From Macrostomum lignano (Eukaryota), in NCBI GenBank assembly GCA_002269645.1, contig NIVC01003808.1, positions 11,940 to 75,939 of the forward strand: DNA of 64,000 nucleotides, written 5' to 3'. Below are positions 9,097 to 45,825 of the stretch, piece by piece. Both the position numbers and the translations under genes were made by a program. The notes under the pieces were generated by a model. The model ran no database searches, was not told the origin of the DNA, and was given only the letters and a program-made list of their open reading frames with translations. Position 1 is the stretch's first letter. The number at the start of each line of letters is the position of its first letter.

Positions 9097-11219
9097 TCAA
9101 AGCAGGCTGCAGCAGCATTTGGCAGACGAGCCGCCACCCTGCAGAGCAGCCATGCCAGACTGCTGCCTGTTCAGCTGCGGCCGGCCGCGCTTGTGGTCCA
9201 GCACGGAGCGGATCAGGCCGAAGAAGGCCTTCGTTGTGTTGCGTGTAATTAATTTTATTGTTTTGCATTGCGCGTTACATTTTTACAAAATAAAATGCTT
9301 GCACTGCCTCTAATGAGTAGGAATATTCGGACAGCACCTACCAATGTTGAAAAATAATAATAAATGGACAAAAATCATTACACTGTCACGGGGTCATGAG
9401 ACTGTCGGGAGTGATGAGATTTGTCTCGGAGTGATGAGATTTGCCTGAGAGTGATGAGATTGTCTGGGAGTGATGAGACTGTCTGGGAGTGATGAGACTG
9501 TCTGGGAGTGATGAGACTGTCTGGGAGTGATGAGATTTGTCTGGGAGTGATGAGACTGTCTGGGAGTGCGGAGACTGTCGAGACTGTCGGAGTGACGAGA
9601 CTGTCTGGGAGTGCGAAGACTGTCGGAGTGACGAGACTGTCTGGGAGTGCGGAGACTGTCGGAGTGACGAGACTGTCTGGGAGTGCGGAGACTGTCGGAG
9701 TGACGAGACTGTCTGGGAGTGACGAGACTGTCGGAGTGACGAGACTGTCTGGGAGTGCGGAGACTGTCGGAGTGACGCGAATGACGAGAACAAAGATGAG
9801 CGGCCCATCTAAAAGCGCAATCAATGGCTCACCTTGTCGACATTCTCTCTAGTTTTGGCCGACGTTTCCAGGTAGGGGATTCGCCAGGCTTCGGCCCGGG
9901 CCTCGGCCTCCCTGGATTGCACCTGCCGGCCGTCGGTGAGGTCGCTCTTGTTGCCAACCAGCAGCATGGGGATGGACTCGTCGCCTTTTACTCGGATGAT
10001 CTGCTCTCTGCGCGATGGATGCAGTGAGGAGGGAGTAAATTAAATAAGCTTTGCCTGGGAGGGTGGCTGGAAGGTAAGGAGTGTTCGGGAGGGTAAGGAG
10101 TGTTCAGGAGGGTAAGGAGAGTGTCCGGGAGGGTAAGGAGGGTTCGGGAGGGTAAGGAGTGAGAGAGCGGGCACTGCACAGGAATAGAAATCGATGGCCC
10201 CAGAGACGCGAACTGACCTTACCTGAACTCATTAGTGGCGGCAAAGGACTCAGGATCGGTGAGCGAGAACACGCATAGGAAGCCCTCTCCGCCGCGGAAA
10301 TAATTGTCCCGAATGCTGGCATAGTCCTCCTGGCCAGCCGTGTCCAGGATGTCAATGTGCACCTCGGTGCCCTCCAGGGTGACCTTCTTTCGATACATAT
10401 CGGCTTTGGTTGGCTCGTAGTCTTCAACGAACTGGGCGCGGTTGAGACGGAGTTTGACAGAAATTGGCCTAACTATTCGTACATATAGCAATGAATGATG
10501 CTCAAGTAGTGCCACAAGTGCATGAGTAACTACCCTAAAAGTATCAGATTGTATGATATCATGCAGATTGCTTAGCAGGAGTGATCTTCTAAAGAGTGGG
10601 TAGAGTGACTAGGAGAGTGGGTAGAGTGACTAGGAGAGTGGGTAGAGTGACTAGGAGAGTGGGTAGAGTGACTAGGAGAGTGGGTAGCTTCTAGAGAGTG
10701 GGTAGAGTGACTAGGAGAGTGGGTAGAGTGACTAGGAGAGTGGGTAGCTTCTAGAGAGTGGGTAGAGTGACAAGGAGAGTGGGTAGAGTGACTAGGAGAG
10801 TGGGTAGCTTCTAGAGAGTGGGTAGAGTGACTTGGGGAGTGGGTCGAGTACTCGGGAGAGTGGGCAGAATGCCCGGGGGGATTGGGTAGAGTTCCCGGAA
10901 GAGTGAGTAGAGTGCCCGGGAATGGGTAGAGTGACTAGAAGAGTGGGTAGAGTGCCCTAGAAAATAAATATAGTGGCTAGTTATAAATAAGTAATCGACG
11001 AGAATTTAGGACGAGATTACGGGGAGTCTGGAAGACAGCTAGAGCGGACAGTGATAATGTACATGCACAAAATTGCAACTTCAGCAGGCCGACCGTAACG
11101 CTCACCTCGTCGTACATGAACTGCAGCGTAAGGGCGCTTTTACCAACGGCGCCGCTGCCAACCATAATGATTTTGTGCACAGGCTGCGATGAGCTGGTCC
11201 CACTCTTCTGCTTGGACAT
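9097..11219 (-). CDS. RALA: Ras-like GTPase Ral, 4 exons, 209 aa with exon 4a
   Basis: Exons 11219-11106, 10431-10223, 10007-9833 and 9228-9097 (4a) join in frame. Motifs: [29 protein letters not shown] (Ral effector loop), [31 protein letters not shown]. The C-terminus is ...AKCCCSLL*. RalA vs RalB orthology is not resolvable (single invertebrate Ral). Confidence 0.93.
9385..9780. repeat. 19-bp / 36-bp minisatellite in Ral intron 3
   Basis: Unit GAGTGATGAGACTGTCTGG, later a 36-bp composite unit. Confidence 0.9.
10060..10165. repeat. Short GA-rich tandem repeat in Ral intron 2
   Basis: Repeated ggagggtaaggagtgttc-like units. Confidence 0.7.
10595..10960. repeat. 21-bp minisatellite in Ral intron 1
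   Basis: Unit GGAGAGTGGGTAGAGTGACTA. Confidence 0.9.
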
Positions 11220-11444: not shown

Positions 11445-12050
11445 TTCACAGGTGGAGTCCCTATTAGAGTGGGTAGAGTTTTCTATGAGTGTGGTAGAGT
11501 ACATGGGAGTGGGTAGAGTCCAAAGGAGAGTGAGTAGAGTCCTTAGGAGAGTGGGTAGAGCCACTAGGAGGGTGAGTAGAGTCCTTGGGAGCGTGGGTAG
11601 AGCCCCTAGGAGGGTGAGTAGAGTCCCTAGGAGAGTGGGTAGAGTCCCTAGGAGAGTGGGTAGAGTCCCTAGGAGAGTGAGTAGAGTCCCTAGGAGAGTG
11701 GGTAGAGTCCCTAGGAGAGTGGGTAGAGTCCCTAGGAGAGTGGGTAGAGTCTATAGGAGAGTGAGTAGAGTCCCTAGGAGAGTGGGTAGAGTCCCTAGGA
11801 GAGTGAGTAGAGTCCCTAGGAGAGTGGGTAGAGTCTATACCGGTAGGAGAGTGAGTAGAGTCCCTAGGAGAGTGGGTAGAGTCCCTAGGAGAGTGGGTAG
11901 AGTCTATAGGAGAGTGAGTAGAGTCCCTAGGAGAGTGGGTAGAGTCTATAGGAGAGTGAATAGTCCCTAGGAGGGTGAGTAGAGTCCCTAGAAGAGTGAG
12001 TAGTCCGTAGGAGAGTGAGTAGAGTCCCTAGGAGTGTTTAGTCCCTAAGA
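11445..12050. repeat. 21-bp minisatellite upstream of Ral (same family as the intron 1 array)
   Basis: Unit GGAGAGTGGGTAGAGTCCCTA. Confidence 0.92.
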
Positions 12051-13939: not shown

Positions 13940-14700
13940 CTGAGGATCTGGGAGGCTGGCCCAGCAACTGAGAATCTGAGAGGCTGGCACAGCAACTGAG
14001 AATCTGGGAGGCTGGCACAGCAACTGACACTCTAGGAGGCTGGCCCAACAACTGGGGATCTGGGAGGCTGGCCCAGCATGTAAAGATCTGGGAGGCTGGC
14101 CCAGCATGTAAAGATCTGGGAGGCTGGCCCAGCATGTAAAGATCTGGGAGGCTGGCCCAGCATGTAAAGATCTGGGAGGCTGGCCCAGCATGTAAAGATC
14201 TGGGAGGCTGGCCCAGCATGTAAAGATCTGGGAGGCTGGCCCAGCATGTAAAGATCTGGGAGGCTGGCCCAGCATGTAAAGATCTGGGAGGCTGGCCCAG
14301 CATGTAAAGATCTGGGAGGCTGGCCCAGCATGTAAAGATCTGGGAGGCTGGCCCAGCATGTAAAGATCTGGGAGGCTGGCCCAGCATGTAAAGATCTGGG
14401 AGGCTGGCCCAGCATGTAAAGATCTGGGAGGCTGGCCCAGCATGTAAAGATCTGGGAGGCTGGCCCAGCATGTAAAGATCTGGGAGGCTGGTCCAGCAAC
14501 TGAGGATCTGGGAGGCTGGCCCAGAAACTGAGGATCTGGGAGGCTGGCCTAGCAACTGACACTCTGGGAGGCTGGCCCAGCAACTGGGGATCTGGGAGGC
14601 TGGCCCAGCAACTAAGAATCTGGCCCAGCAACTGACACTCTGGGAGGCTGGCCCAGCAACTGGGAATCTGGCCCAGCAACTGAGGGGATCTGGGAGGCTG
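13940..14700. repeat. 28-bp minisatellite upstream of OLA1 (family A)
   Basis: Unit GGCTGGCCCAGCATGTAAAGATCTGGGA, with CAGCAACTGAGG variants at the edges. Confidence 0.95.
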
Positions 14701-15323
14701 GCGGATTCTAATACTGTCACTCTGTCATGTCTATTCCTTTCAATCGTTAGATACAAAGCAGAAACTACGAGCAGAAATATTTGATTACAAACAGCAATTT
14801 TAATCAGACAGTTTATTATCCATTACACCAATTACTTGGATGATTCTTAGTTACAAAGATTATGAAAGCTATGATAAGGTACCGGGTATATTAATGAAAG
14901 GAAGAGTAAGTATGTGATTACATCTAGCGACGCCTGCTGATAGGTGGACAGAGACAAAACAGGCGAATACAGCAAAACTATACTCAAAGAAACTAATTGT
15001 CTCAGAGCACCAAAGTGTCTCGGACGTCACCAATGTTTAAATTAATTTTGGCAACAATTTGATTGGGAGTGAACAAATATAAAGCACACCCAAACATGGC
15101 TACTAATCTAGTAGTAAGCAGCGAGTTTAAAACACACATTAGAGAAAAAACTTGAATATTACAAAGAAATGCCTTACAGAAGCAGTTTTGTGAATTTTGA
15201 ATTTTTATAATTGAACGCATATGAATTGGGCTTCAACACACGGAAAACTTTGAGCAACAATTTATCGAATAGAAACTGAACAGCAACAAGAGGAACGAGA
15301 ACGCGCAGGCATCCGTATCGGGA

Positions 15324-18300
15324 TCAGGACCAATCTTCATCCGACAGCCAGTTCAATTGGATGGCGTCCTGGCACAGGCTTGGCGGGTAGGTTTGGTATT
15401 GCAGCTCGCTTGATGGGTCCGCGTCTGCCAACGATCAATACTAATGAGCTAATAGCATGTCGCCTGGATGACACCATCCTGTTTCCTGTCTGCACCTGCT
15501 GCTTCCTGTCTGACACCATCCTGTTTCCTGTCTGCACCTTCTGCTTCCTGTCTGTCACCTGCTGTTTCCTGTCTGTCACCTGCTGTTTCCTGTCTGCCAC
15601 CTGCTGTATCCTGTCTGCCTCCTGCTGTATCCTGTCTGCCTCCTGCTGTATCCTGTCTGTCACCTGCTGTTTCCCGTCTGTCACCTGCTGTTTCCTGTCT
15701 GTCACCTGCTGTTTCCTGTCTGTCACCTGCTGTTTCCTGTCTGTCACCTGCTGTTTCCTGTCTGTCACCTGCTGTTTCCTGTCTGTCACCTGCTGTTTCC
15801 TGTCTGTCACCTGCTGTTTCCTGTCTGTCACCTGCTGTTTCCTGTCTGCCAGCTGCTGTTTCCTGTCTGCCTCCTGCTGTTCTGTCTTCCACTTGCTGTT
15901 TCCTGTCTACCATTATGCTTTTTCCTGTCTGCCACCTGCTGTTTCCTGTCTGTCACCTGCTATTTCCTGTCTACCATTATGCTGTTTCCTGTCTGCCAGC
16001 TGCTGTTTCCTGTCTGCCTCCTGCTGTTCTGTCTTCCACTTGCTGTTTCCTGTCTACCATTATGCTTTTTCCTGTCTGCCACCTGCTGTTTCCTGTCTGT
16101 CACCTGCTGTTTCCTGTCTACCATTATGCTGTTTCCTGTCTGCCAGCTGCTGTTTCCTGTCTGCCAGCTGCTGTTTCCTGTCTGCCATTATGCTGTTTCC
16201 TGTCTGTCACCTGCTGTTTCCTGTCTACCATTATGCTGTTCCCTGTCTGCCACCTGCTGTTCCCTGTCTGCCACCTGCTATTTCCTGTCTACCATTATGC
16301 TGTTTCCTGTCTACCATTATGCTGTTTCCTGTCTGCCAGCTGCTGTTTCCTGTCTGCCTCCTGCTGTTCTGTCTTCCACTTGCTGTTTCCTGTCTACCAT
16401 TATGCTTTTTCCTGTCTGCCACCTGCTGTTTCCTGTCTGTCACCTGCTGTTTCCTGTCTACCATTATGCTGTTTCCTGTCTGCCAGCTGCTGTTTCCTGT
16501 CTGCCAGCTGCTGTTTCCTGTCTGCCATTATGCTGTTTCCTGTCTGTCACCTGCTGTTTCCTGTCTACCATTATGCTGTTCCCTGTCTGCCACCTGCTGT
16601 TCCCTGTCTGCCACCTGCTGTTTCCTGTCTGCCTCCTGTAGTTTCCAATACATTCTAATTTTACGACTATCCTGATCCAACTGTTTCCACAGTGTAAATA
16701 TACTTCAGGCAAATCATTACCGTCAGAGTAGAACGGCACCGAGGTCGACTTGAAATTGCCGCCGCCGCCGCCGCCGTCGTCGTACCTGGCCAGCAGCTGG
16801 CCGACTGTCGCCGTCTCGCAGCCGAACTCCGCCAGCCGGTGCCGCAGCTCGCCGCCAGCCTCAGCCTCGCCGCTGCAATCGTCCGGCACAAGCAGAAGAA
16901 ATTCGCGGTGCCGGCAGCGCAGGCGGGTCTGCAATTCGGCGAGGCCGTCAACGCAGCCGAGCAGCCCGGCGCCGCCGGAGCCGCCTTCGCCAGGCAGCAG
17001 CGAGTCGACGGCCCAGCGGCTGGCCTCCAGCATCTCCAGACAGGCGGCCAGGCGCTGCCGCTCCGATTTGGCTTTCAACGAAGCGGCCGCGGATGCCCCG
17101 GCGGCTTCAGTCGCGGCATCTCGCAAACGGCGAAGGTCGCGAGCTCGAATCCCGATTGGCCAGCGGCTGTCGCGGCGGCCTGCGGCGGCTAACAGGCGGG
17201 TCAGGGTGTCCGGCTGGTAGCGCAGCGGGTCGCCAAGCAGCAGGCAGGGACCGCCGGTGACGGGGAAAATTGGTTGGAGAGATGAGGCCAGCGATGAGGC
17301 TGAGCTGGAGGCTGGGGAAGTGGGAATAAACAATATGGATGTGGCAATCATAAATGTGTTCATTATAGCTTAGTCTCAACTGGGAAGCTGGGAGGCTGGC
17401 CCAGCAACTGGGGATCTGGGAGGCTGGCCCAGCAACTGAGGATCTGGGAGGCTGGCCCAGCAACTGAGGATCTGGGAGGCTGGCCCAGCAACTGAGGATC
17501 TGGGAGGCTGGCCCAGCAACTGAGGGGAGCTGAGAGGCTGGCCCAGCAACTGAGGATCTGGGAGGCTGGCACAGCAACTGACACTCTGGGAGGCTGGCCT
17601 AGCAACTGACACTCTGGGAGGCTGGCCCAGCAACTGAGGGGAGCTGAGAGGCTGGCCCAGCAACTGAGGATCTGGGAGGCTGGCCCAGCAACTGAGGATC
17701 TGGGAGGCTGGCCCAGCAACTGAGGATCTGGGAGGCTGGCCCAGCAACTGAGGATCTGGGAGGCTGGCCCAGCAACTGAGGGGAGCTGAGAGGCTGGCCC
17801 AGCAACTGAGGATCTGGGAGGCTGGCACAGCAACTGACACTCTGGGAGGCTGGCCTAGCAACTGACACTCTGGGAGGCTGGCCCAGCAACTGAGGGGAGC
17901 TGAGAGGCTGGCCCAGCAACTGAGGATCTGGGAGGCAGGCCCAGCAACTGACGCTTTGGGAGGCTGACCCTGAAATCGAAGATCTGGGAGGCTGGCCCAG
18001 CAACTGAGGATCTGGGAGGCTGGCCCAGCAACTGACACGCTGAGAGGCTGGCCCAGCAACTGAGGATCTGGGAGGCTGACCCTGAAACTGAGGATCTGGG
18101 AGGCTGGCCTAGCAACTAAGGATCAGGGAGGCTGGCCCAGCAACTGAGGATCAGGGAGGCTGGCCTAGCAACTAAGGATCAGGGAGGCTGGCCCAGCAAC
18201 TGAGGATCTGGGAGGCTGGCCCAGCAACTGAGGATCAGGGAGGCTGGCCTAGCTACTGAGGATCCCTATGAGCAGTCTCACCCGTAGCAGCGCAGGCAGC

Positions 18301-21300
18301 CGCCGCAGCCGCCCTGGCCTGCTCAAAAGCCAGAAATCGAACGTCGCGCCGTTTCCGAAGCTCCAGCAGGCCGGGCAGCTGCCAGGGCAACCTGTCCAGA
18401 GCGGAGGCGTGGGCGTACACCACGAGCTGCTGCTGCTGCTGCTGCTGCAGTTGCTGAATGCCATCCCGTCGGGGTCCACGGCACTGCAGCAGCAGGGAGG
18501 CGTGCAGCGGATCGCACTGCCGATGTCCGAGGCTGGTCAGGCGGCTGGCCAGATCTGCGCACTCCGCACTGTCCGAGATGCCGACCACGTGGAAGAATGG
18601 CGGCGGTGGAGGAGGAGGCGGAGGCGGCGGCGGCACAATGGACTGCTGCTGTGGCTGCAGTAGCGCAGATAGCAGAGGAGTAGGATAGTACTAATTAGAT
18701 GACGAGACATTTAGCCTTAATAATACAGTCATAGTTACTCCTGCTGTTTACCACAAAACTGCGTTAATTTTTGCTGAGGTTTCTTTTATAGGTAGGTCGC
18801 ATTTTTGGTAAAAAAAAGTAAGTTTAAGTTCCATAGTTTCTGTAATCCATATCTCATTAGTAGTATTAAATAATTTTATAATTTTTGGGATTCTCGTGAG
18901 TTCACTTGAAAGGTCAAGGGTTCGATTCCTGATTCTACTCGAGAGTTCACCCAGCTGTAAAATGGGTAACCAGCATTAGCTGGGGTAACTGAGGGTGTGA
19001 GTGGCGAACCCCCCAGTCCTTGGACTGAACAGCCGTACGCAGCCTTCAGATGCGACGATGCGCCACGCAATAGCTGCGGCTGAGCTGTAGGTTGCACATA
19101 TGGCCCAATTGGGGCAGGTTTATCAATTATTAATATTATTATTTTGGACAGTCTTGGCCCAGCGGCTAGCAACTGACACTCTTCGAGGCTGGCCCAGCAA
19201 CTGAGGATCTGGGAGGCTGACCCTGAAACTGAGGATCTGGGAGGCTGACCCTGAAACTGAGGATCTGGGAGGCTGACCCTGAAACTGAGGATCTGGGAGG
19301 CTGACCCTGAAACTGAGGATCTGGGAGGCTGACCCTGAAACTGAGGATCTGGGAGGCTGACCCTGAAACTGAGGATCTGGGAGGCTGACCCTGAAACTGA
19401 GGATCTGGGAGGCTGACCCTGAAACTGAGGATCTGGGAGGCTGACCCTGAAACTGAGGATCTGGGAGGCTGGCTTAGCAACTAAGGATCAGGGAGGCTGG
19501 CTCAGCAACTGAGGATCAGGGAGGCTGGCCTAGCAACTAAGGATCAGGGAGGCTGGCCCAGCAATTGAGGATCAGGGAGGCTGGCCTAGTAACTAAGGAT
19601 CAGGGAGGCTTAAATTTAAAATTCAAGACTGCTTATTAATTGTCAAACTTGAATAATCCGGATTCTGCATTCTGCAACTATTGTGGTTCAGAAAAAGACT
19701 CAGCAGTGTTAAGGGTAGGGCAGAGAATTTATTGACTAGAAAAAAGGTTCAGACATACCGCATGGCTGTAATAGGCGGCAAGGAAGCTGTGATCGATCGA
19801 GCCGGCTTGCCTAGCAACGGTTGCTAGGGCGGCGGACGCCCGCTGCTGCTGCTGCTGCTTAGCGACGGCCAGAGCGGCCAGCAGTCTGGTTTGCATCTGA
19901 GCGGACAGAGGCGGCGGCTGCTGCGGCTGAGACGGTGGCGCCTCATCGTCAAGGAAAGCATCGGCCAGGCCAATCTTGTAGCTGCGGATCATCGCGTCCT
20001 GGCGTTCCCGATAGGTCAGCGCGGAGCCGCCCGCGGCCGGCTCAGCAGCGGCAGGCGGCGGCGGTGGCTGCTGCCGGGGCATTGCGAGCTGGGAATTATT
20101 GTGATGGAGATGAGGCGGTTCAGGCGACGGCCGGAGCCTGGGCGGCAAGCAGCCTGCAGCAGGGGGTAAGGAGATTGAAGCAGCTGGGAGCGTTGCGTGG
20201 GCACTGAAGGGCTTGCTAATCTAAGGGATAGAAATGAACTAACATGGATACATGTGGGCAGGTTATTAGGAAGACGCTGCTTATAGTAGTATTCGGGATT
20301 TCAGAACGCAAGTCTTCGTATAGGGGGTATTAAGAGATTTTTACTTAAAGTACCTTTACGACTTTCGGTATTTACGTTGGGAGATTTTCGGAATCAGCTG
20401 TATTGCGGGGTTTTATGAATCAGCTGAATTGGGAGATTTTGGGAATTAGCTGAATTGGGAGATTTTGGGAATCAGCTGAATTGGGAAATTTTGGGAATTA
20501 GCTGAATTCGGACTTTAGGAATTAGCTGAATTGGGGGACTTTGGGAATTAGCTGAATTGGGGGATTTTAGGTATGAGCTGAATTGGGAAATTTTTGGAAT
20601 CAGCTAAAGTGGGAGATTTTGGGAAATTGTGTGAATTTGGGATATTTCGGGAATTAGCTTAATTGGGGGATTTTGGGAATTAGGTGAATTGCACGAGGGG
20701 GGGTTCGGAATCAGCTGAATTATGAGATTTAGGAACAGTTGAGTTGGGAGATTTTGAGAATCAGCTAAATAAGGTTTTTCCTTTAAAAATGAGTTAGTTT
20801 TTTAAATCAGAGCTGTGCCAACTCAGAACTCACACTTCTGCTGAGCAATGCTTCCAGCAGCGGCAGATTCGAAAAGAATATCGCTGGGCCACTGCAAACT
20901 GGGCGCCGGCGACAAAGGTCGACGCAGAACTTGCCGTTGACAGGCGGTCATCGTCCAGTCGGACAGACCCTTTGACAGACACCGGCTGGCCGAGAACCGC
21001 CTCGGTGGCAGTGGCGGCAGGGCTCCAATCGACGCCGCTGTCAAATTCGGCAAACAGCCGTCAGCGGCTCTTAGAAACCGGCGTGCAGTCGAGCGCAGTC
21101 GATGCCGCAGTCGACGAATTCGCCGACGAACAATCGAGCCAGACTTGGCGGCGCCGTCAATCCCAGCGTCAACATCGTCGACTACATCGAACTTGTCAAA
21201 GCCGATGCTCACAGGACTGCCGACATTGCCGCCACCGCTGCCGCTGTTATCATCGCCGTCAAAATCGTCGTCGTCGCTTGTCAAAGACGCGGCCGCCGTC

Positions 21301-24300
21301 AGAGAGTCTGGATAGAGTTGGTTGATCGCCAACTGCTCGTTGCTAAGGACGCCACCGCCGCCCGCGTAGAAACCGTCCAGGTAGCGCAGTAGAGCGAAGC
21401 CGACGTTGCGAACGCTTCTTGAGCGACGCTTGGGGTCTGCGGTAAGGTCCGGAAATGTGGACTGCCAGACTAGTGAAACATGGACTACCAGACTAGTGAA
21501 ACATGGACTGCCAGACTAGTGAAACATGGATTGCAAGACTAGTGAAACATGGATTGCCAGACTAGTGAAACATGGATTGCCAGACTAGTGAAACATGGAT
21601 TGCCAGACTAGTGAAACATGGATTGCTAGACTAGGGAAATATGGATTGCTAGACTAGGGAAATATGGATTGCTAGACTAGGGAAATATGGATTGCTAGAC
21701 TAGGGAAATATGGATTGCTAGACTAGGGAAATATGGATTGCTAGACTAGGGAAATATGGATTGCTAGACTAGGGAAATATGGATTGCTAGACTAGGGAAA
21801 TATGGATTGCTAGACTAGGGAAATATGGATTGCTAGACTAGGGAAATATGGATTGCTAGACTAGGGAAATATGGATTGCTAGACTAGGGAAATATGGATT
21901 GCTAGACTAGGGAAATATGGATTGCTAGACTAGGGAAATATGGATTGCTAGACTAGGGAAATATGGATTGCTAGACTAGGGAAATATGGATTGCTAGACT
22001 AGGGAAATATGGATTGCTAGACTAGGGAAATATGGATTGCTAGACTAGGGAAATATGGATTGCTAGACTAGGGAAATATGGATTGCTAGACTAGGGAAAT
22101 ATGGATTGCTAGACTATTCAAACGACTATCAAAAGCTCGCCATACCGCCGCTATCCAACGTGCCCCGCTCCATCAGCCACTCGGTCAGGGCTGCCTGAGC
22201 GGTGCGGCCGAGCTGACGCCGCAGGTGTAGCGGCAGCGACTCCTCCAACAGGGCGGCGTTGGCCCGTCGTGTTAGTCGAGACGCCGCATCCACTGGCAGA
22301 CGGCGAAGACGTCGACGTGGGGGAAAATGGCGAGACTGCTGAGAAGGCTGCGACTGGGATTCAGCTGGAATGGTGAGGTCAGCGTGGGTGAAAATTAAAG
22401 TGCAGATGCAGCAGCCGATTGACAATCCAACTATCAGAGTAGAGTGACAATCTGACTACAGAGTGACAATCTGACTATCAGAGTGACAATTTGACTATCA
22501 GAGTGACAATTCGACTACGAGAGTGACAATCTGACTATCAGAGTGACAATTTGACTATGAGAGTGACAATTTGACTATCAGAGTGACAATCTGACTATCA
22601 GAGTGACAATTTGACTATCAGTGACAATCTGACTATCAGAGTGACAATTCGACTATGAGAGTGACAATCTGACTATCAGAGTGACAATTTGACTATGAGA
22701 GTGACAATTTGACTATCAGAGTGACAATCTGACTATCAGAGTGACAATCTGACTATGAGAGTGACAATTCGACTATGAGAGTGACATCTGACTATCAGAG
22801 TGACAATTTGACTGTCAGAGTGACAATCTGACTATCAGAGTGACAATCTGACTATGAGAGTGACAATTTGACTATCAGAGTGACAATTTGACTATCAGAG
22901 TGACAATTTGACTATGAGAGTGCAGTTTGACTATCAGAGTGACAATCTGACTATCAGAGTGACAATTTGACTATCAGAGTGACAATTTGACTATGAGAGT
23001 GACAATCCGACTATCAGAGTGACAATTCGACTATGAGAGTGACATCTGACTATCAGAGTGAGAATTTGACTATGAGAGTGACAATTTGACTGTCAGAGTG
23101 ACAATCTGACTATCAGAGTGACAATCTGACTATCAGGACTAAAATCTGGTGAGTTTTAACTTCAATAGTATACACCTGGCGCATACCTGAGCAGTCGGCA
23201 GTGGACTGAGTATTATCCCGCAAAATGACGGCCAGATTCTGTTTAAAATCTGCCAGCGCCAATTCAGCCTGGGATCTGTCACCGGAATCGGAAGCGATAG
23301 CAGCGCGACCCGAGCCGGCGGATTGGGCCAGGCCACGGCCAAGACGGCGAACTTCTGACACCAGACTGGGCGACTTGGCGAGGCAGGTGGACAGCAGGCT
23401 GTCTGAAGAGGGTTAGGGTGATGCTGCAGATAAGCTTTCATGTGAGCAGTGAGGATCTGGGAGTGCGGCAGGTGGCCCAGCAACTGAGGATCTGGGAGTG
23501 CGGCAGGTGGCCCAGCAACTGAGGATCTGGGAGTGCGGCAGGTGGCCCAGCAACTGAGGATCTGGGAGTGCGGCAGATGACCCAGCAACTGAGGATCTGG
23601 GAGTGCGGCAGCTGGCCCAGCAACCGAGGATCTGGGAGTGCGGCAAGTGGCCCAGCAACTGAGGATCTGGGAGTGCGGCAGATGACCCAGCAACTGAGGA
23701 TCTGGGAGTGCGGCAGGTGACCCAGCAACTGAGGATCTGGGAGTGCGGCAGGTGGCCCAGCAACCCAGGATCTGGGAGTGCGGCAGGTGCTCAGCAACTG
23801 AGGATCTGGGAGTGCGGCAGGTGGCCCAGCAACTGAGGATCTGGGAGTGCGGCAGCTGGCTCAGCAACTGAGGATCTGGGAGTGCGGCAGGTGGCCCAGC
23901 AACTGAGGATCTGGGAGTGCGGCAGGTGACCCAGCAACTGAGGATCTGGGAGTGCGGCAGGTGGCCCAGCAACTGAGGATCTGGGAGTGTGGCAGCTGGC
24001 CCAGCAACTGAGGATCTGGGAGTGCGGCAGGTGACCCAGCAACTGAGGATCTGGGAGTGCGGCAGGTGGCCCAGCAACTGAGGATCTGGGAGTGTGGCAG
24101 CTGGCCCAGCAACTGAGGATCTGGGAGTGCGGCAGGTGGCCCAGCAACTGAGGATCTGGGAGTGCGGCAGGTGGCCCAGCAACTGAGGATCTGGGAGTGC
24201 GGCAGGTGGCCCAGCAACTGAGGATCTGGGAGTGCGGCAGGTGGCCCAGCAACTGAGGATCTGGGAGTGCGGCAGGTGACCCAGCAACTGAGGATCTGGG

Positions 24301-25353
24301 AGTGCGGCAGGTGGCCCAGCAACTGAGGATCTGGGAGTGTGGCAGCTGGCCCAGCAACTGAGGATCTGGGAGTGCGGCAGGTGACCCAGCAACTGAGGAT
24401 CTGGGAGTGCGGCAGGTGGCCCAGCAACTGAGGATCTGGGAGTGTGGCAGCTGGCCCAGCAACTGAGGATCTGGGAGGAATAAAAGTACTCAAAGTAGGC
24501 CACTCACCAACAGACGCAGGTAAGTCGATGCTGTCATCATCGGAGCCGCTGCTCACTTGAGCCTCCAAGTTGCACGCAGCGGTGAAGCGGTCGTCAATGA
24601 AGCTCTGCAGTTGGCTCACCGCTGTAGTTGGCGAAATTTCTGCATTGTTGAAAAAGTGAAAATAAAGCAGTTGCAGCACCATTGTGTAGGAGAATCCATC
24701 TTAGATAAGTAGGGACCTGAGCGGAGTGAACTATAGCTCATTCGGTAAATATAGGGACCTGAGCGGAGTTAACTATTGCTCACTCGGTAAAAATAGGGAC
24801 CTGAGCGGAGTACTGGCATAAATAGAACAATGCATTAAAACTACATATATTGAACACCTGCATCTGTTCCATTGACTTCAGAAGCTTTATCAGCCGGTTT
24901 GCTGCTAGCAGATGCATTGGCAACAACAACAGCAGAAGCAGTATCAGAAGAGGCTGGCAAGCACCGCGTCAGAGCCACCTGAGTCTCCGATAGCAGACAA
25001 TCTGCCAAATCGTCAAGCGATGAATCTCCATTTCCAGCATCCTCATTGCTGGCATTGTTATTAAACTCCTCGGCGGCCTTGCAAACTTCATCAAGCTGCT
25101 TAGCTAGGCTAGCCAGATTCAGCTTAGCAATCTTGTCCACCGAGGCGCAAATGGCAGCTTCACTGGGCTGCCCATCGCTAGATGACGGTGCCAGTTTCCG
25201 CTTCCGGTTGCCATTTCCCGTCTGGCTGGAACTGCCATCCAGGCCAGATTGGGTCAGCCGGTTCAAAAAGTTGGACACTTCATCGGCTGCTGTGGCCGAG
25301 GCTGCATCAACCTCGGGCATGTCCGGGCCATTGCCCAGCTTGGAGGTGAGCAT
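15324..25353 (-). CDS. TASOR/FAM208-like protein (C-terminal alpha/beta + PIN-like region), 9 exons, ~1040 aa
   Basis: Exons 25353(first Met)-24858, 24639-24508, 23402-23187, 22364-22146, 21436-20834, 20153-19759, 18654-18282, 17311-16721 and 15424-15324 are all GT-AG with consistent phases (3126 nt). C-terminal segments (FFHVVG..LASRLTSLGHRQCDP; QLPGLLELRKRRDVRFLAF; FPVTGGPCLLLGDPL; RWPIGIRARDLRRL; LLGCVDGLAELQTRLRCRHREFLLL; EFGCETATVGQLL) resemble, in order, my recollection of the TASOR/TASOR2 C-terminus. The exon structure is well supported; the family call rests on a by-eye comparison only. Confidence 0.7.
15470..16640. repeat. 21-bp minisatellite with higher-order blocks in the last intron of the TASOR-like gene
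   Basis: Unit CCTGTCTGTCACCTGCTGTTT, with recurrent longer blocks containing accattatgc. Confidence 0.95.
17375..18250. repeat. 28-bp minisatellite (family A)
   Basis: Unit GGCTGGCCCAGCAACTGAGGATCTGGGA. Confidence 0.95.
18695..18825. repeat. Dispersed repeat fragment shared with the MITE at 46091-46356
   Basis: gacgag.catt...acagtcatagttactcc.gc.gtttacc...gcgttaattttg...gtcgcattttt aligns with 46201-46325. Confidence 0.75.
18905..19143 (+). mobile_element. 5'-truncated tRNA-derived SINE with CORE-like central motif
   Basis: B-box GGTTCGATTCC (18919-18929), CCCAGCTGTAAAATGGGTA resembling CORE-type SINE cores, and a (TAT)n-like 3' tail. Confidence 0.6.
19160..19610. repeat. 28-bp minisatellite (family A variant)
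   Basis: Unit GGCTGACCCTGAAACTGAGGATCTGGGA. Confidence 0.93.
20395..20770. repeat. 26-bp degenerate minisatellite
   Basis: Unit GGGAATTAGCTGAATTGGGAGATTTT. Confidence 0.85.
21455..22115. repeat. 23-bp minisatellite
   Basis: Unit GGATTGCTAGACTAGGGAAATAT, nearly perfect; the first copies are GTGAAACAT variants. Confidence 0.95.
22425..23135. repeat. 20-bp minisatellite
   Basis: Unit GAGTGACAAT(C/T)TGACTATCA. Confidence 0.95.
23445..24477. repeat. 35-bp minisatellite (family A plus 7 bp)
   Basis: Unit GGCCCAGCAACTGAGGATCTGGGAGTGCGGCAGGT; the spurious ORFs repeat every 35 aa. Confidence 0.95.
24700..24812. repeat. 42-bp tandem repeat (~2.5 copies)
   Basis: tagggacctgagcggag at 24710, 24752 and 24794. 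Confidence 0.85.
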
Positions 25354-31822: not shown

Positions 31823-34800
31823 TCAGATAAACATGCAGGGCTCCGGGAGGTCGCGATAGTAGGGCCAGCCGACTTGAGCGAAAAACCATCGGTACTCTTC
31901 GTCGAGGACCGTCAGCGCTGGCGGCGGGTTGGCTCTTATAGCTCGCTGGAGGCGATAGGCGACGTCCTGGAGAACAGCGACAGCTTCCTGGTAACTGAAT
32001 TGATCCCTTAGAAACTTCAGGTGTGTCCAAATTTGCGAGCATTGGGGGTAGCGCTGTCGGCTGTCGGATAGGGGGCGACCCAGTCCCGGGCCCGGGCCCG
32101 AAAAGTCGGGAATCCCGACCAAAATCGTGGCCCGACCCGGGCCCGGGCCCGAACCTAAAAAAGTCGGGAAATCGGGACAAGTCTTTTTTCCCTAAAGGCA
32201 CTAACCGCGTGCGAATAAGAAAAAATTATTTTTCAACACATTCACACTAATTTACCCTTAATTCCAGCCCCAGGAAAATGCAACTGCAACTGCAAGGCAT
32301 GACTGCATGAGGCATCTCTGTCTCTGGTCGGTCACTGACCTCACCTCGACCTCACCTGACCTGACTGTGAGCGGTCTGTGATTCTATGAAGCTGTCGGTC
32401 ACTCACTGTCACTGGTGACTGGTGTCAGTCAAGCTCAAGCCTGTCTGCCCTGCCCCGGCTGTCCGTGAAGTTCGGTGATGTCTGGTGCTGCTCCCATCCC
32501 GATTCCCGATGTCCAGTCCAGGTCCAGGCTGCCAAGTCCGAGTGCCGATGCCGACTCCCGTTCCCGTTCCGTCACCGTCCTGAGTCTTGGACAGCTGGAC
32601 TCCTGTCCTGAGTCCTGACTCCCACTCGAGCTTGAGTCAAGTAACCCACTCACTTAACTAAACAGTCAGATTCGAATTTTCGAGTGTACATGTACGACAA
32701 TAAAATTACATACTGTTCAAAATTGATGATACATATCATACAATATACATACAATATAGATATATGTATATATATATATATGTAATACTGATAGACTGAT
32801 AGTGATATCATATCTGATACCGATTTATTGAAATTGACATCGTAAAAGATTACTGACTTCTGAGTTTTGACTTTTTCCTTTTTTATCACTTTCGTTTCGT
32901 CTGGACTCCTGGAGTGGAGAAGAGAAGTTGAGTGGAGGCCGAGGCCCGAGGGTGGACTGGACTGGACTTTGAACTTTCTGGGCTCGTGGAGTGGAGTCGT
33001 GTCGTGTCTGAGGCGTGAGTCGTGACTTGTGACTGATTCGTGATTCGCGAGTTTTGTTTTGACCGTGACGGTGACTCGTGATTGTGTAGTGACTCGTGAG
33101 TCGTGATCGTGACTCCGTAAGTGATGGACTACAGACGGAGTGCTAAAAATCACTGCTAGGCTAGTGCTATAAGTATCGAGTAATTATTACTGTCACTTTC
33201 GTTAGAATTATACAGTGTAGTGTAGTGTACTCTAATCAATAATCATTTCATCGTCATCCGTCATGTCAGGTCAGTGGTCAGGACTCAGGACTCAGGATCA
33301 GGACAGCACAACACTCAGTTAAGCATCGCATCAGTAATAGTAATAGATTTAGTATATTTAGATGATATGATGTGAAGTAGCAATATCATTGATTCGTAGT
33401 AGGCTCTTAGCGTGAGCGTCTGTGACCGTGAGCGTCAGCCACAGCCAGTTTCCACTTTCCAGGAAGATCGGATTTTTTTCCAGGAAGATAAAATTAAAAC
33501 ATAGTTTTGCAATACTTTTTTGCAATATTGATTCCACTTTACACGCTGCAGGCTGCAGCCTAAAAGCAAAAATATGATTCTTTAAAAAGTTTATTTGTCA
33601 TTTTTAAGCTTTTGTAAATAACATTTCCTATTTACATTCCAAGAAGGCTACCATTTTTCCAAGAAGTTTGCTATCTATTAGAGTTTGTAATCGTGTTCAT
33701 ATTTGTATCGTAGGTAGTCGTAGTCGTAGACTTGTAGTATCGTATTCGTAATCATATTCGTTTAAGTAGGTAGGTGAGCAGGTAGGCAGGTATCAGCTAA
33801 TTACTTGTATTTCCATTGTCTGTTTGCCTGTTCTGTTGAGACAGTTGAGTGTTGTGTTGTGTTGTCACTTCACTTGTGTTCTGTTCTGTTATCTTGTCTT
33901 GTTGTCTTACTGAATACTGACTGTGTACATGGCTCTTTACATTGAAGCTATGTAAAGGATCTAAAAATTCAAATAAAAGAATCAATCAATTGATTTGGTT
34001 CTTACTTCCTTACTGCTTCCTATGCCAAGTGCCTTATACTTAATGCTTCAGCTTTTCTTCTTTTGCTTACTGCCACTGCCAGTGCCAGCCGCACTGCCGC
34101 AGTGACTGCTTGCCTACCTCACTGCTTGTTAGTATCACTGTCACTGGCACACACACAGTACTTGTGCCACACACTCACACAGTGACATTGAATTTGAACT
34201 ATTGAGTATATTGATATTTGAGTATTAAGTCTTTTAATGTAACTCTTATCTTATTCTGAAGTCTTAACTAATGTATTAAATAATAATAATATTTATTGTA
34301 TATTTATTATATTTAAATTTAAATATTTATTATATTTAATATAATATATTATATTTATTATATTTATATATTATTATATATTTAATATATTTATATATTA
34401 TAATATATTTAATGTTTATCATATATTTATTATACCTTTAATATATTATATTAAATTTAATATATTGATATATTTATTATATATTTAATAGTAATCCGCA
34501 TATGCTAAAAGTATTAAGATTTATTATGATTTTTTTCCAATTATTGAGCTGTCCTAAAGATCTTGTCCCGAATTCCCGAGGCCCGACCCGGGCCCGAGTC
34601 CTCATTCCCGGGCCCGACTTTGGCCGTCCCGGTCGCCCCCTACTGTCGGATCGGTGGTACGCTACTTTCAGTGCGTATTGCTCAATGTGGAAGCGTAGCT
34701 TTTCCACCTCTGCTCCGCGAGTCTCCACAAGTTCTCGGACGATGCGATGAAAATCTCTCTGCGAATTCGATTGCTGCTGGCTCGGCTGTAGTGCTGATGG

Positions 34801-35279
34801 CTGGCTAGACTGCTGCGCTGATTGCAGGCTCGGCTGCAACGCTGACTGCTGCGCTGATTGCAGGCTCGGCTGCGACGCTGGCTGCTGAGCTGGCGGTGTC
34901 GCAGCTGTCGATTTCTTCTGCCGTGGTGCCGGGGTCTTTCTCGATGATGGGGCAGCTGGCGGTGACACCAACTGCTGCGTTCGGCTTGATGTCGACGATC
35001 CTGGCGTGGCCTTGACAACATAGGAGCGCACGGGCGCAGCTGCCTGTGCTGCCACCAGGGCGGCGCGCTTCTGCTCGGGCCTTCGACCCTCATTTGGCGG
35101 CAAGGCGATGAAGCTGGCGATGATGTTCTTGGCCGTTTGCTGGATACACCAGGCGCCTTTGGACGTGTTGCACATCGAAGCGGTGCCTCATTTTCGTCGG
35201 TGTTGGGCGCTGGCTGGGGCTCCATATCGTCTGACAGATTGCCAATTAACTCGTCCAAGATATCAATAGAGTTGTTCAT
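31823..35279 (-). pseudogene. Accessory ORF of the LTR element, interrupted by the hAT insertion (unknown function)
   Basis: Removing 32069-34642 and one TSD copy joins ...KVAYHRSDS to RQRYPQCSQIW...EPCMFI* in frame (35175-34643 + 32060-31823 = 771 nt). The probable true start is MNNSIDILDELIG at 35279, which needs a frameshift near 35100. Confidence 0.7.
32069..34642. mobile_element. Non-autonomous hAT-type DNA transposon (2574 bp)
   Basis: Perfect 12-bp TIR TAGGGGGCGACC / GGTCGCCCCCTA, an 8-bp TSD CTGTCGGA (32061-32068 and 34643-34650) and subterminal cccgggcccga repeats. An 8-bp TSD with TAGGG termini is typical of hAT. No transposase ORF is visible. Confidence 0.9.
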
Positions 35280-35362
35280 TTTGATTTCTCTGCGAATGGC
35301 TCTTAGAATAGAAAGGAAGCTAGCAGTGAGCTATGGGATCTGTGGGGCCTGCAGGGTGCTCG

Positions 35363-35430
35363 TATTTATAGGCTGGCGGGCCGAAAAACTGGACCTCTTC
35401 GAAGCACTCCCCTCGCGCGTGGGGCGGGGC
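35363..35430 (-). promoter_or_regulatory. Candidate internal Pol II promoter (TATA + GC box) for the accessory ORF
   Basis: TATAAATA on the minus strand at 35370-35363 and GGGGCGGGGC at 35421-35430, about 85 nt upstream of the ATG at 35279. Confidence 0.4.
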
Positions 35431-35680
35431 ATGCCAGATTTGACAGATTTGACAACTAAATTTTTATGGATTTTCTATTTCTTTTTATAACTTTTTTTAT
35501 TTTTTGATAGATTTTCTTGAGTAAAGTATCAAATTAAAGATCGCATTTTGTAGATTAATATGGTATTTACAGATTCGCTCTATGTACAGCATGTCAAATT
35601 TTATAAGCAGATAAGTAATTTTAATACGGAATTTTAACTATTTAACACTGTTTCTTATGGGAAATTGCTTACGTCATGAT

Positions 35681-36163
35681 TTAAGGTGCTAAATATTTCG
35701 CGTAGCGCCTTCGGGGCACAAATCCTGTCGCGCCTTCTCTTTCTCTCCTTCGCTGAGTCATCCTAAAGTTATACCTATTCTCTGGCTGAACTCGTTCCTC
35801 CTCTAACTCTAATGCTCCTTCTTCTTCTTCTGATGGCTCATCTGAGTCAGTCGCTCTCTCTGTATTCTCACTGTTCAATTCTTCATTTCCTTCGTTTTCA
35901 CTCTGCGAATTCGGATCTGCGAATACTCTCCATTGAATTCTGTTTTCTTCGTCTGAGCTTTCCTCCTCTAAAATTTGAACTTCTGGAATTCTAACTTCTT
36001 TTTGTCTATGGCAAATTCTTTTCTTCGGCTTCGGCTGTTCCTTCTTCTTAGTTGACACTATTGCTGGTTCTAAATTATCATTATTAATTTCTTCTGGTAA
36101 ATCAATTTCGGATTTCGGCACTGGAGTCAGATTATTACTGTTTTTCTTCGAACAATTTTGCAA
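35681..36163 (-). pseudogene. Acidic ORF, possible remnant of the pol C-terminal tail
   Basis: E/S-rich and ending RYNFRMTQRRR...PRRRY, like the RYNLR..RRPxRY tails after Gypsy integrases. No catalytic domain is left. Confidence 0.4.
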
Positions 36164-36961
36164 ATTCTCACAGCTTCTCTTCGAAATCTCATCTTCATTT
36201 TATCTCATCTCAACTCAACAACTTCTCGACTCAATATCTCAACTCGACCCTGACCTCTCGAAAGCTTCTCTGCTGAACTCATGCCAGCTACAGCTCTACT
36301 GTCACGGGTCCTACAACTCTTAACAAATTCTCAAATCTCGAATCTCCTTCCGCTATCTCAGTTTGGCCTCGTCAGTAGAATCATAGAAATTCTGTATTAA
36401 TCTGCTCTTTAGGCCTTACTGCCCTTCCTTTCCTGCATGGCCTGACTCTCTGAACCTTTTTTGGCTCTTCTGAAAGCGTCATCGGCCTCTTCTTTCTGCC
36501 TTTGGCCAATCCGCAATTGGTCAGCATGCGTAGCTGTCCGCGCGTCATGCCAATCTCTGCAATCCAATCTTTTCGACAATTCTCTTCGCACAATTCTGCA
36601 CAGTTCTCTCAGCATCAACTTCTCGTCAACTTCTCTGAGTAAAATAATCTTCCTTCAATGTTTTCAGTCCGAAATTGCAGTTCCCTGGCTTTCCTAAATA
36701 AGTTTTTTAGTAAAACGGCCCTTTTAAGGTCAAACGGCCCTTTTAAGGGTCACCTTCCTAAAATTTAATTATTTTATTTCTTTTAGACAGCTTATTGCCT
36801 TGCAACATGCCAACAAAATACCTCTTAATCAAATGTTTTTGGGTTTTTCTGAATTTTTTATTCGTTTTTATATTTATGCATATATATTTGAAACATATTT
36901 ACAGATTTGCTTTACAGACACTTTTAATTTGCTGATTCGCTTGAGTTCGCTCACTTTCTGA

Positions 36962-45469: not shown

Positions 45470-45825
45470 TGCCTACTATCTTGGAGTGCTTGCTATCTGG
45501 AGATGCGTGCTATCTGGGGATGCTTGCTATCTGGGGGTGCTTGCTATCTGGGGGTGCTTGCTATCTGGGGGTGCTTGCTATCTAAGGGTGCTTGCTATTA
45601 GGTGGATGCTTGCTATCTGGGGTCCCTGCTATCTTGGAGTGCTTGCTATCTGGAGATGCGCGCTATCTGGGGGTGCGTGCTATCTGGGGGTGCTTGCTAT
45701 CTGGGGGTGCTTGCTTTCTAAAGGTGCTTGCTATTAGGTGGATGCTTGCTATCTTGAGGTGCTTGCTATTAGGTGGATGCTTGCTATCTGGGGTGCCTGC
45801 TATCTGGGGGTGCTTGCTATCTGGA
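45470..45825. repeat. 17-bp minisatellite with a ~148-bp higher-order duplication
   Basis: Unit GGGGGTGCTTGCTATCT; the block starting cctactatcttggagtgc recurs near 45625. Confidence 0.88.

Follow-up and report, generated by a model that had tools for sequence, protein, structure and literature searches.

A flatworm (Macrostomum lignano) gene of nine exons encoding a protein whose C-terminal region may be a very divergent relative of the TASOR/TASOR2 DomII and PIN-like module

Here we describe a genuine nine-exon protein-coding gene of Macrostomum lignano, located on the minus strand of the window (the whole 64-kb stretch of DNA that was analysed). On balance, the C-terminal ~280 aa of its predicted product are probably a very divergent relative of the DomII and PIN-like module of TASOR/TASOR2, and it is plausible that this flatworm protein carries a TASOR-type C-terminal module. 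Because it is without a pseudo-PARP domain, a SPOC domain and a recognisable DomI, the protein cannot be recognised as an orthologue of the HUSH scaffold, and we offer it as an interesting lead, a candidate rather than a demonstrated HUSH component.

Background

Both the activity and the assembly of HUSH require the pseudo-PARP, SPOC, DomI/MPP8-binding and Periphilin-binding parts of TASOR, whereas its DomII/PIN part, of which residues 1233-1466 are homologous to DomII/PIN of Chp1, is dispensable for transgene repression (PMC7532188). No experimental structure exists for TASOR DomII/PIN (PMC7618375). TASOR-like proteins with a DUF3715-SPOC-DomI architecture are known throughout Metazoa (PMC10578480), and the view in the earlier note that HUSH-like machinery is poorly characterised in lophotrochozoans is therefore only half right; literature linking HUSH or TASOR to flatworms was not found.

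Results and discussion

Gene structure

The spliced coding sequence (minus strand, 25353..15324; Table 1) comprises 3126 nt, encodes 1041 aa with no internal stops and ends with a TGA at 15326-15324, in agreement with an earlier note that had proposed nine phase-consistent exons and a product of ~1040 aa. All eight introns are bounded by GT..AG with good consensus. Exon GC content ranges from 0.54 to 0.70, with introns 1 and 3-6 clearly AT-richer than the exons and introns 2 and 7 equal to them. A minisatellite array (20-35 bp) is present in each of introns 2 to 8, and the ORFs flanking the exons are translated minisatellites, as was recognised earlier when they were called repeat-derived. Several frames are open in these GC-rich exons, so that the length of an ORF counts for little by itself. 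An earlier AG was ruled out as the acceptor of exon 3 because an in-frame stop sits upstream of the chosen site. Exon 1 is acidic and Ser-rich and holds an NLS-like NRKRKL (25209-25192); exon 5 holds a basic patch, RRRIRRLRHRLR (21128-21093).

Table 1. Exons of the predicted gene and candidate domains of its product
Feature	Coordinates	Strand	Description
Exon 1	24858..25353	-	aa 1-165; ATG at 25353; open frame, GT donor; joined to later exons by phase consistency only
Exon 2	24508..24639	-	aa 166-209; acceptor AG, donor GTGAGT, in phase
Exon 3	23187..23402	-	aa 210-281; acceptor ...CTCTTCAG/ACAGCC
Exon 4	22146..22364	-	aa 282-354
Exon 5	20834..21436	-	aa 355-555
Exon 6	19759..20153	-	aa 556-687; Pro/Gln-rich; acceptor 20153 matches P0001
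Exon 7	18282..18654	-	aa 688-811; poly-Pro run, then most of the putative TASOR alpha/beta (DomII)-like domain
Exon 8	16721..17311	-	aa 812-1008; end of the alpha/beta-like domain and candidate PIN-like region
Exon 9	15324..15424	-	aa 1009-1041 and stop; acidic tail ...LNWLSDEDWS; phase-1 acceptor TTGGCAG/AC, sequence signal only
Putative TASOR alpha/beta (DomII)-like domain, main part	18282..18597	-	aa 707-811; FFHVVG...; poly-Q insertion; PF23314, hhalign, Smith-Waterman
Putative alpha/beta-like domain, end	17250..17311	-	aa 812-832; ...IFPVTGG vs TASOR ...ELFVSGG; MAFFT and hhalign; TASOR Pfam boundary
Candidate degenerate PIN-like region	16782..17249	-	aa 833-988; PCLLLGD...RWPIGIRARDLRRLRD...RHREFLLLV...GQLLARY; hhalign and MAFFT collinear

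Two public M. lignano models, which are gene models rather than reads, overlap the prediction, one (P0001) covering exons 5-8 and the other (P0002) exons 7-8. P0002 (UniProt A0A1I8HAZ4, 174 aa) is 100% identical to the predicted protein and matches the exon 7/8 junction (18282/17311) residue for residue ('...CAAT/ASSSASS...'), the same boundaries as in the join of 18654-18282 to 17311-16721 on which the earlier note depended. P0001 is frameshifted and links exons 5 to 8, with an exon 5 donor that corresponds to a second in-phase site at 20900, and it leaves out the last part of exon 6 and the first part of exon 7.

Similarity of the C-terminal region to TASOR/TASOR2

Among 24,736 Pfam families, PF23314 (TASOR_alpha-beta, "DomII") is the sole one to appear for the protein, and its match (aa 708-799) is located where the similarity to TASOR had been placed before. 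All of its scores (12.6-21 bits) are lower than the curated gathering threshold of 27 bits: 12.6 bits (E 0.15) for the full-length 1041 aa, rising to 20-21 bits (E 4-7e-4) when only the exon or domain is used as query, with an E of 6.7e-4 for the raw ORF 18253-18636 and 3.8e-4 for the 97-aa domain; with the 354-aa C-terminus as query, it again ranks first in Pfam (E 0.015). The alpha/beta part taken alone gave P 1.4e-4 in hhalign and P about 1.5e-4 by Smith-Waterman alignment, with non-significant cross-domain controls. These results provide reasonable support for a DomII-like similarity to TASOR/TASOR2, in a domain whose end (aa 812-832) is preceded by an Ala/Ser-rich insertion.

The similarity is concentrated in this domain and is weaker in the region that follows. 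PF24630 (PIN_TASOR) had no match in the Pfam scan of the protein, such that the Pfam check suggested earlier for the C-terminus returned the predicted alpha/beta family, sub-threshold, and not the PIN family. This part was non-significant against the human TASOR PIN in Smith-Waterman alignment (P 0.4), as it was against an unverified fragment of human TASOR2 (P 0.4), and TASOR2-like P0025 was the only family member to give significance (Smith-Waterman P about 1e-4); in hhalign, the part alone gave P 0.044 and was surpassed by shuffles. A degenerate PIN-like domain after DomII is thus weakly indicated.

When the C-terminus as a whole was compared with a real TASOR/TASOR2 alignment, hhalign returned a probability of 66.7% and a score of 39.2 over 192 collinear columns (TASOR 16-216 vs ML 7-245), with a P of 5.3e-5 which, like the other targeted P-values, overstates database-wide significance because TASOR was chosen from all families by the same similarity. 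Compared with this 39.2, the best of 60 shuffles scored 21.9, windows from the N-terminal part of the protein no more than 20, and the sequence in reverse 10. BLASTP gave E 8e-6 with TASOR2-like P0025, in an alignment crossing the DomII/PIN boundary, and E 0.005 with human-type TASOR. In domain-wise Smith-Waterman comparisons, each half of the M. lignano region was similar to the cognate domain of the TASOR family (P about 1e-4) but not to the non-cognate one (P 0.1-0.8), and MAFFT independently gave the same register. Identities at family-invariant columns (24/59) compare with 17.5 +/- 3.0 (maximum 26) in a shuffled and realigned control (z about 2.2), under which the enrichment largely vanishes. 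Exhaustive phmmer searching of 1.8e9 representatives recovered relatives from M. lignano only, and hence no bridging sequences.

The five collinear matches first proposed are approximate but genuine, the same segments being paired by MAFFT, BLASTP and hhalign with true TASOR/TASOR2 sequences. In the order flatworm then TASOR family, these are FFHVVG..LTSLGHRQCDP with FYIHEE..LIKLGNTECHP, LPGLLELRKRRDVRF with IPGLVTLKKLPCVSF, IFPVTGG with ELFVSGG, RWPIGIRARDLRRLRD with KWQWKVHCKFQKKLKE, and VDGLAELQ..RHREFLL with LDCLIRLQ..RHVVFLT.

Structure prediction

The last ~320 aa had been described as globular, a description that the predictions do not bear out: the region is broken by three low-complexity insertions (poly-Q, poly-A/S and poly-G), and AlphaFold2 modelled it at a mean pLDDT of 38.5 when given one sequence only and of 52.5 when the TASOR alignment was added. 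The alignment-assisted model contains a low-confidence beta-alpha-beta-alpha-beta pattern in the DomII-like part. Foldseek searches with this poor model, covering the PDB, which includes a Chp1-Tas3 entry, gave no meaningful match (best PDB E 1.9).

N-terminal part and upstream DNA

The first ~690 aa are of low complexity (Ala/Ser/Asp/Pro/Gln-rich), with basic NLS-like patches. No Pfam family was found at E<=10 in aa 1-687, SPOC included, and the pseudo-PARP domain (DUF3715) was found neither there nor in the full 1041 aa at the same cutoff. The pseudo-PARP domain of TASOR has a PDB entry; the N-terminal part of the flatworm protein had no PDB sequence match. An unverified human TASOR N-terminal sequence, used as query in exploratory tblastn and BLASTP searches, gave no similarity. 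Upstream minus-strand ORFs of at least 90 aa had no Pfam match, and the interval 26-31 kb (31% GC) is almost devoid of ORFs of at least 60 aa on both strands. Neither strand holds a competing gene accounting for exons 1-4, and MPP8, Periphilin and SETDB1/MORC2 were not found within the 64-kb window.

Comparison with known systems

As in vertebrate TASOR (FAM208A) and TASOR2 (FAM208B), the flatworm protein, long and largely disordered, appears to carry near its C-terminal end an alpha/beta domain with about 150 aa beyond it. It differs from them in its identity of only 17-27%, in its sub-threshold PF23314 and absent PF24630 matches, in its low-complexity insertions, in being without pseudo-PARP or SPOC, and in size (1041 aa vs about 1670 aa for TASOR, TASOR2 being longer). 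Of the original designation as a TASOR-like (HUSH-type) protein, a C-terminal module is plausible, given PF23314, hhalign and BLASTP, and the remainder is not borne out. Invertebrate TASOR-like proteins share with it a partial TASOR architecture, but theirs is the N-terminal DUF3715-SPOC-DomI part, with DomII/PIN not reported (PMC10578480), whereas the flatworm protein would represent the complementary half, a DomII/PIN-like end only, which could be a novelty. By transitivity via TASOR, the module may share an ancient silencing-platform fold with Schizosaccharomyces pombe Chp1 (RITS), probably in non-catalytic form; Chp1 has a chromodomain and SPOC, and the flatworm protein has neither.

Alternative explanations

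The principal alternative is that the gene is real and its C-terminus is a lineage-specific orphan region, Ala/Leu/Arg-rich and largely helical, in which common beta-alpha-beta and amphipathic-helix patterns marginally resemble TASOR by coincidence. We consider this rather unlikely, though several observations favour it, including Pfam scores that are all sub-threshold (and insignificant at full length), PIN matches that differ between TASOR-family members, the marginal realignment control, an hhalign probability of just 67%, the failure to find homologues elsewhere, and uninformative AlphaFold and Foldseek results. Against it, the single Pfam family listed is the predicted one, aligned at the right place, hhalign and Smith-Waterman scores lie far beyond those of composition-preserving shuffles, and cognate domains match where non-cognate ones do not, in TASOR order and, as in TASOR, C-terminally in a protein that is long and disordered.

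A divergent TASOR/TASOR2-like C-terminal module could, at the other extreme, belong to a full TASOR orthologue and HUSH scaffold whose pseudo-PARP, SPOC and DomI have diverged or lie in unrecognised upstream exons, and which acts with MPP8- and Periphilin-like partners in retroelement silencing. The C-terminal similarity (hhalign, BLASTP, Smith-Waterman), the long protein with a disordered centre and the distribution of TASOR-like proteins across Metazoa (PMC10578480) are in keeping with this, but the empty N-terminal 687 aa, the upstream DNA with its ORFs free of Pfam matches, the fruitless tblastn search and the shorter length make it very unlikely, and DomII/PIN is the very part that HUSH transgene repression can dispense with (PMC7532188). 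Also very unlikely is that the gene model joins at least two transcription units (e.g. exons 1-4 and 5-9) or has a wrong last exon, in which case no such 1040-aa protein exists. M. lignano trans-splices, phase consistency is easily reached given the many GT/AG sites, and the public models are partial, P0001 also disagreeing with the prediction at exons 5 to 7; opposing this are eight good junctions, exons that form GC-rich islands (introns 2 and 7 being equally GC-rich), a 3.1 kb coding sequence with no in-frame stop, and exons 1-4 that no competing gene explains.

Conclusions

If the C-terminal region is indeed related to TASOR/TASOR2 DomII/PIN, the protein may be nuclear, with a disordered N-terminal part bearing interaction motifs, and its DomII/PIN-like end may be a platform, without catalytic activity, on which a partner protein or nascent RNA docks. 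By analogy with DomII/PIN of Chp1 (RITS) and with the uncharacterised DomII/PIN of TASOR, such a platform would act in the silencing of repeat or transposon transcripts. The gene structure, the organism and a sequence similarity exceeding shuffled controls are shown, whereas fold, localisation, partners and role are all proposed. A broader and rather improbable possibility is that Spiralia, too, have kept the DomII/PIN platform common to fission-yeast Chp1 and vertebrate TASOR/TASOR2, in the form of a free-standing protein detached from the pseudo-PARP/SPOC/DomI half. If so, the 'modern' TASOR architecture would have arisen by fusion, or would have been split in flatworms, and M. lignano would use modular HUSH/RITS-like silencing of nascent transcripts in an exceptionally repeat-rich genome.

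Gene structure and public protein models

The minus-strand gene for which the earlier note proposed a TASOR (HUSH-type) identity was rebuilt mechanically, giving a spliced coding sequence of 3126 nt (1041 codons) that is in phase, contains no internal stops, and ends in a TGA at 15326-15324. This matches the nine phase-consistent exons and approximately 1040 aa reported previously, with identical boundaries for the two exons that had been named (exons 7 and 8). Each of the eight introns has GT..AG ends that fit the donor and acceptor consensus well, and lies between coding islands of 54-70% GC. More than one frame is open within the GC-rich exons, and ORF length alone is therefore weak evidence. 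The encoded protein is long, largely of low complexity, and carries NLS-like basic patches (NRKRKL and RRRIRRLRHRLR). Exons and surrounding features are summarized in the table below.

Coordinates (window-based), strand, and supporting evidence or annotation of the nine-exon gene and surrounding features. P0001 and P0002 are public M. lignano protein models.
Feature	Position	Strand	Basis or annotation
Exon 1	25353-24858	minus	phase and splice signals only
Exon 2	24639-24508	minus	phase and splice signals only
Exon 3	23402-23187	minus	phase and splice signals only
Exon 4	22364-22146	minus	phase and splice signals only
Exon 5	21436-20834	minus	included in P0001 string of exons 5 to 8
Exon 6	20153-19759	minus	acceptor 20153 matched by P0001
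Exon 7	18654-18282	minus	junction to exon 8 matched by P0002
Exon 8	17311-16721	minus	junction to exon 7 matched by P0002
Exon 9	15424-15324	minus	phase and splice signals only
Minisatellite arrays with common core	13945-14702, 17377-18264, 19185-19610, 23450-24477		28-bp units, 35-bp variant; core GAGGATCTGGGAG
Other intron arrays	15479-16646, 20377-20770, 21451-22116, 22441-23136		21-, 26/52-, 23-, and 20-bp units; at most 55 copies
SINE-like stretch (intron 6)	18880-19060		GGAATCGAACCC-like
Long repeat-derived ORFs	11452-11970, 45592-45918, 51581-52019, 53149-53817, 54697-55500		periodic translations (RRVSRVPRRVGRV..., MRSPIRSSQCPFLQ..., SQSTVSISSQSTVS...)
YchF/OLA1-type GTPase gene, intronless, 398 aa	12523-13719	minus	Pfam MMR_HSR1 E 1e-20, YchF-GTPase_C E 3e-38
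Ras-family small GTPase, two exons	10219-10515, 10977-11219	minus	Pfam Ras, E 3e-21 and 2e-4
Adducin-like gene	47403-50474	plus	ORF 48706-49875: class II aldolase/adducin N-terminal domain, E 2e-16
ORF cluster, 160-230 aa, 42% GC	34477-37540	minus	Gln/Ser/Pro-rich with basic stretches; no Pfam match

To find relatives, the C-terminal 335 aa were compared with 5.8e9 proteins by word-indexed search and exhaustively with 1.8e9 cluster representatives by phmmer; only two proteins came back, both UniProt entries of Macrostomum lignano: P0001 (A0A1I8FQ82, 542 aa) and P0002 (A0A1I8HAZ4, 174 aa). A scan of JGI metagenome contigs yielded no relatives. Since only these two M. lignano fragments were found, no orthologue alignment could be built. 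P0002 is 100% identical to the model, which identifies the window as M. lignano DNA, and crosses the exon 7/exon 8 junction (...AAACAAT before it, ASSSASSLASS... after it); the joining of these exons, on which the earlier note had staked its reading, thus holds at the level of a public gene model. P0001 is a frameshifted translation, with repeated frame changes, in which exons 5 to 8 are linked. Its acceptor for exon 6 is the modelled one, but it implies an alternative in-phase exon 5 donor at 20900 (66 nt upstream of the modelled donor) and lacks the last part of exon 6 and the first part of exon 7 (19868..18516). Both entries are public gene models and not transcript evidence. The pattern in P0001 suggests that it was predicted from an indel-rich assembly, either paralogous or earlier, and its differences could also reflect alternative splicing. 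The two entries are named 'Adenylate kinase' and 'Nuclear receptor domain-containing protein', but the corresponding sequence has no such Pfam domain, and both names appear to be annotation artefacts. The gene itself is real, and as the public protein entries of the locus are fragmentary, frameshifted, and misnamed, the practical gain is a corrected gene model.

Repeats and genes surrounding the locus

The long ORFs flanking the exons, described in the earlier note as repeat-derived, are indeed tandem-repeat translations in several frames; the intron minisatellite arrays create spurious long ORFs on both strands. Four arrays share the core GAGGATCTGGGAG, which occurs in 56 exact copies, all on the plus strand (0.01 expected by chance), in introns 7, 6, and 2 and just downstream of the gene, and nowhere else in the 64 kb. 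The arrays appear to derive from one repeat family that was seeded several times within 11 kb. The remaining intron arrays are mutually unrelated, and since each remaining intron has its own array, introns 2 to 8 are all mostly tandem repeat. Such arrays are pervasive across the window and not peculiar to this gene. The stretch in intron 6 resembles the T-arm/B-box of a tRNA-derived SINE; ARAGORN and Rfam searches of the whole window identified no tRNA and no RNA family.

The YchF/OLA1 gene lies directly downstream of the nine-exon gene on the same strand. The Ras-family GTPase looks Ral-like, and ORFs 47403-47939 and 49935-50474, without Pfam match, are probably further adducin-like exons. 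The ORF cluster, in which ORF 36962-37540 carries a CxxC..P..H..C-like motif, resembles what is left of a Gag-like retroelement protein.

Similarity to the C-terminal domains of TASOR

The only Pfam family matched by the flatworm protein, in every context, is PF23314, the TASOR alpha/beta domain (DomII), with aa 708-799 aligned to positions 6-82 of the 95-position profile. The full 1041 aa score 12.6 bits (E 0.15); the C-terminal 354 aa reach 15.8 bits (E 0.015), the raw ORF 18253-18636 reaches 20.1 bits (E 6.7e-4), and the 97-aa domain alone 21 bits (E 3.8e-4). All of these lie below the curated cut-off of 27 bits, and PF23314 therefore never qualifies. Removal of low-complexity insertions brought no gain (17.2 bits), so the match is not rescued by trimming. 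No context produced a match to PF24630 (PIN_TASOR). The profile check proposed in the earlier note thus recovers the expected family in the right region, but below threshold and without its PIN companion. Its PDB check came back empty: phmmer searches of PDB sequences with the C-terminus and the N-terminus found nothing relevant, and the TASOR DomII/PIN profile has no solved relative among PDB sequences, consistent with the lack of an experimental structure for these domains (PMC7618375).

For direct comparison, a segment covering human TASOR DomII/PIN served solely as bait to retrieve real sequences. It retrieved P0003, a human-type sequence 100% identical over the whole length and annotated PF23314+PF24630. 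A TASOR profile search gave 277 proteins at E<=10; the 120 matches listed are mostly short fragments, the few named ones being vertebrate TASOR (Gracilinanus agilis, Larimichthys crocea), and include P0025, a TASOR2-like transcript product of 245 aa. BLASTP of the flatworm C-terminus gave 23.5 bits against P0003 (E 0.005, 17% identity over 204 aa) and 32 bits against P0025 (E 8e-6, 22% identity, 148 aa, spanning the DomII/PIN boundary). Using hhalign, a 12-row TASOR/TASOR2 alignment matched the flatworm sequence over 192 collinear columns (TASOR 16-216, flatworm C-terminus 7-245) with a probability of 66.7%, P 5.3e-5, and a score of 39.2, compared with at most 19.1 for 30 global shuffles, at most 21.9 for 30 local 20-aa-window shuffles, 10 for the reversed sequence, and at most 20 for three N-terminal windows of the flatworm protein. 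The five residue pairings proposed in the earlier note agree in register with an independent MAFFT alignment, but are only approximate as listed. Identities at TASOR-family-invariant columns (24/59 vs 4.6 expected by permutation) were rejected as strong evidence: shuffled sequences realigned by MAFFT reach 17.5 +/- 3.0 (maximum 26), which places the observed count only about 2 SD higher, and it is therefore not relied on.

The two domains behave differently when split at the Pfam boundary of P0003 (alpha/beta 6-100, PIN 104-245). With hhalign, the DomII half alone scores 30 (P 1.4e-4; shuffle maximum 20.8), and the PIN half alone 17.8 (P 0.044), which shuffles exceed (maximum 24.3). In Smith-Waterman tests with 1000 shuffles, the flatworm alpha/beta region gave P about 1.5e-4 against human TASOR and P 2-6e-3 against the partial P0025 domain, and the flatworm PIN region P 0.4 and P about 1e-4, respectively; all four cross-domain controls gave P 0.1-0.8. 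A human TASOR2 fragment (an unverified query, 49% identical to P0025) gave P 0.012 with the alpha/beta region and P 0.4 with the PIN region. Overall, the similarity to DomII recurs across tests and exceeds what composition would give by chance, yet is sub-threshold database-wide, and the PIN similarity is fragile.

AlphaFold2 models were too poor for structural comparison, with a mean pLDDT of 38.5 from the single sequence and 52.5 with 15 TASOR/TASOR2 rows. The latter model has a beta-alpha-beta-alpha-beta pattern in the DomII-like part (pLDDT 50-66) and helices only in the PIN-like part; Foldseek against the PDB with these low-confidence models returned noise (best E 1.9). The models do not confirm the globular character that the earlier note gave to the last ~320 aa.

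Interpretation and alternative explanations

On balance, we favour the view that the flatworm C-terminus is remotely homologous to TASOR/TASOR2 DomII, with a degenerate PIN-like region after it. That an orphan protein shows the similarity by chance is a less probable account, though one to be taken seriously: the fragile PIN comparisons and sub-threshold Pfam scores are consistent with it, and the DomII and collinear hhalign scores exceed those of their shuffled controls. A mis-joined gene model is improbable; exons 1 to 4 and 9 have phase and splice signals as their basis, and the exon 7/exon 8 junction is present in P0002.

Likewise improbable is a complete HUSH scaffold whose N-terminus has diverged beyond recognition. 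In human cells, the pseudo-PARP (DUF3715), SPOC, DomI, and the Periphilin-binding linker are needed for HUSH activity and assembly (PMC7532188). In the flatworm protein, aa 1-687 match no Pfam family at all, neither DUF3715 nor SPOC, and DomI and the linker, for which no profile surfaced, are not detectable. Pfam searches of minus-strand ORFs of at least 90 aa from 25.5 to 47 kb, seeking hidden pseudo-PARP or SPOC exons, gave no match, nor did an exploratory tblastn with an unverified human TASOR N-terminus. The 26-31 kb region upstream is AT-rich (31% GC), with ORFs of at least 60 aa almost absent on both strands, which together with the lack of Pfam matches makes a 5' end near 25.4 kb plausible; no hidden pseudo-PARP exons are apparent upstream. 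The protein is thus not a recognisable TASOR orthologue, contrary to the HUSH-type identity first proposed, and the locus does not show that flatworms have HUSH.

Most accounts treat HUSH as a vertebrate system, and our literature search found no link between TASOR or HUSH and flatworms. TASOR-like proteins have already been reported throughout Metazoa on the basis of DUF3715-SPOC-DomI; descriptions of the full architecture, DomII/PIN included, come from vertebrates (PMC10578480). Whereas the N-terminal half defines these invertebrate proteins, the flatworm protein has the DomII/PIN-like half only. The conserved DomII/PIN end, to which no role has been assigned, is not needed for repression of a transgene in the standard reporter assay, and all folded parts of HUSH except this one have been studied structurally (PMC7532188, PMC7618375). 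If it works as Chp1 does in RITS (PMC7532188), a DomII/PIN-like protein would most likely act as a non-catalytic docking platform on repeat-derived transcripts or chromatin.

The remote-homology signal is marginal and sub-threshold, and what it offers is therefore a lead that can be tested. Should the homology be real, a spiralian would have the complementary half of TASOR standing alone: a known module in a new architecture, and not a new kind of system. A protostome protein with only the DomII/PIN-like half would date the module before vertebrates. M. lignano is amenable to RNAi and transgenesis, and the function and antiquity of DomII/PIN would, if this reading is true, become testable with the module on its own in a genetically tractable animal.
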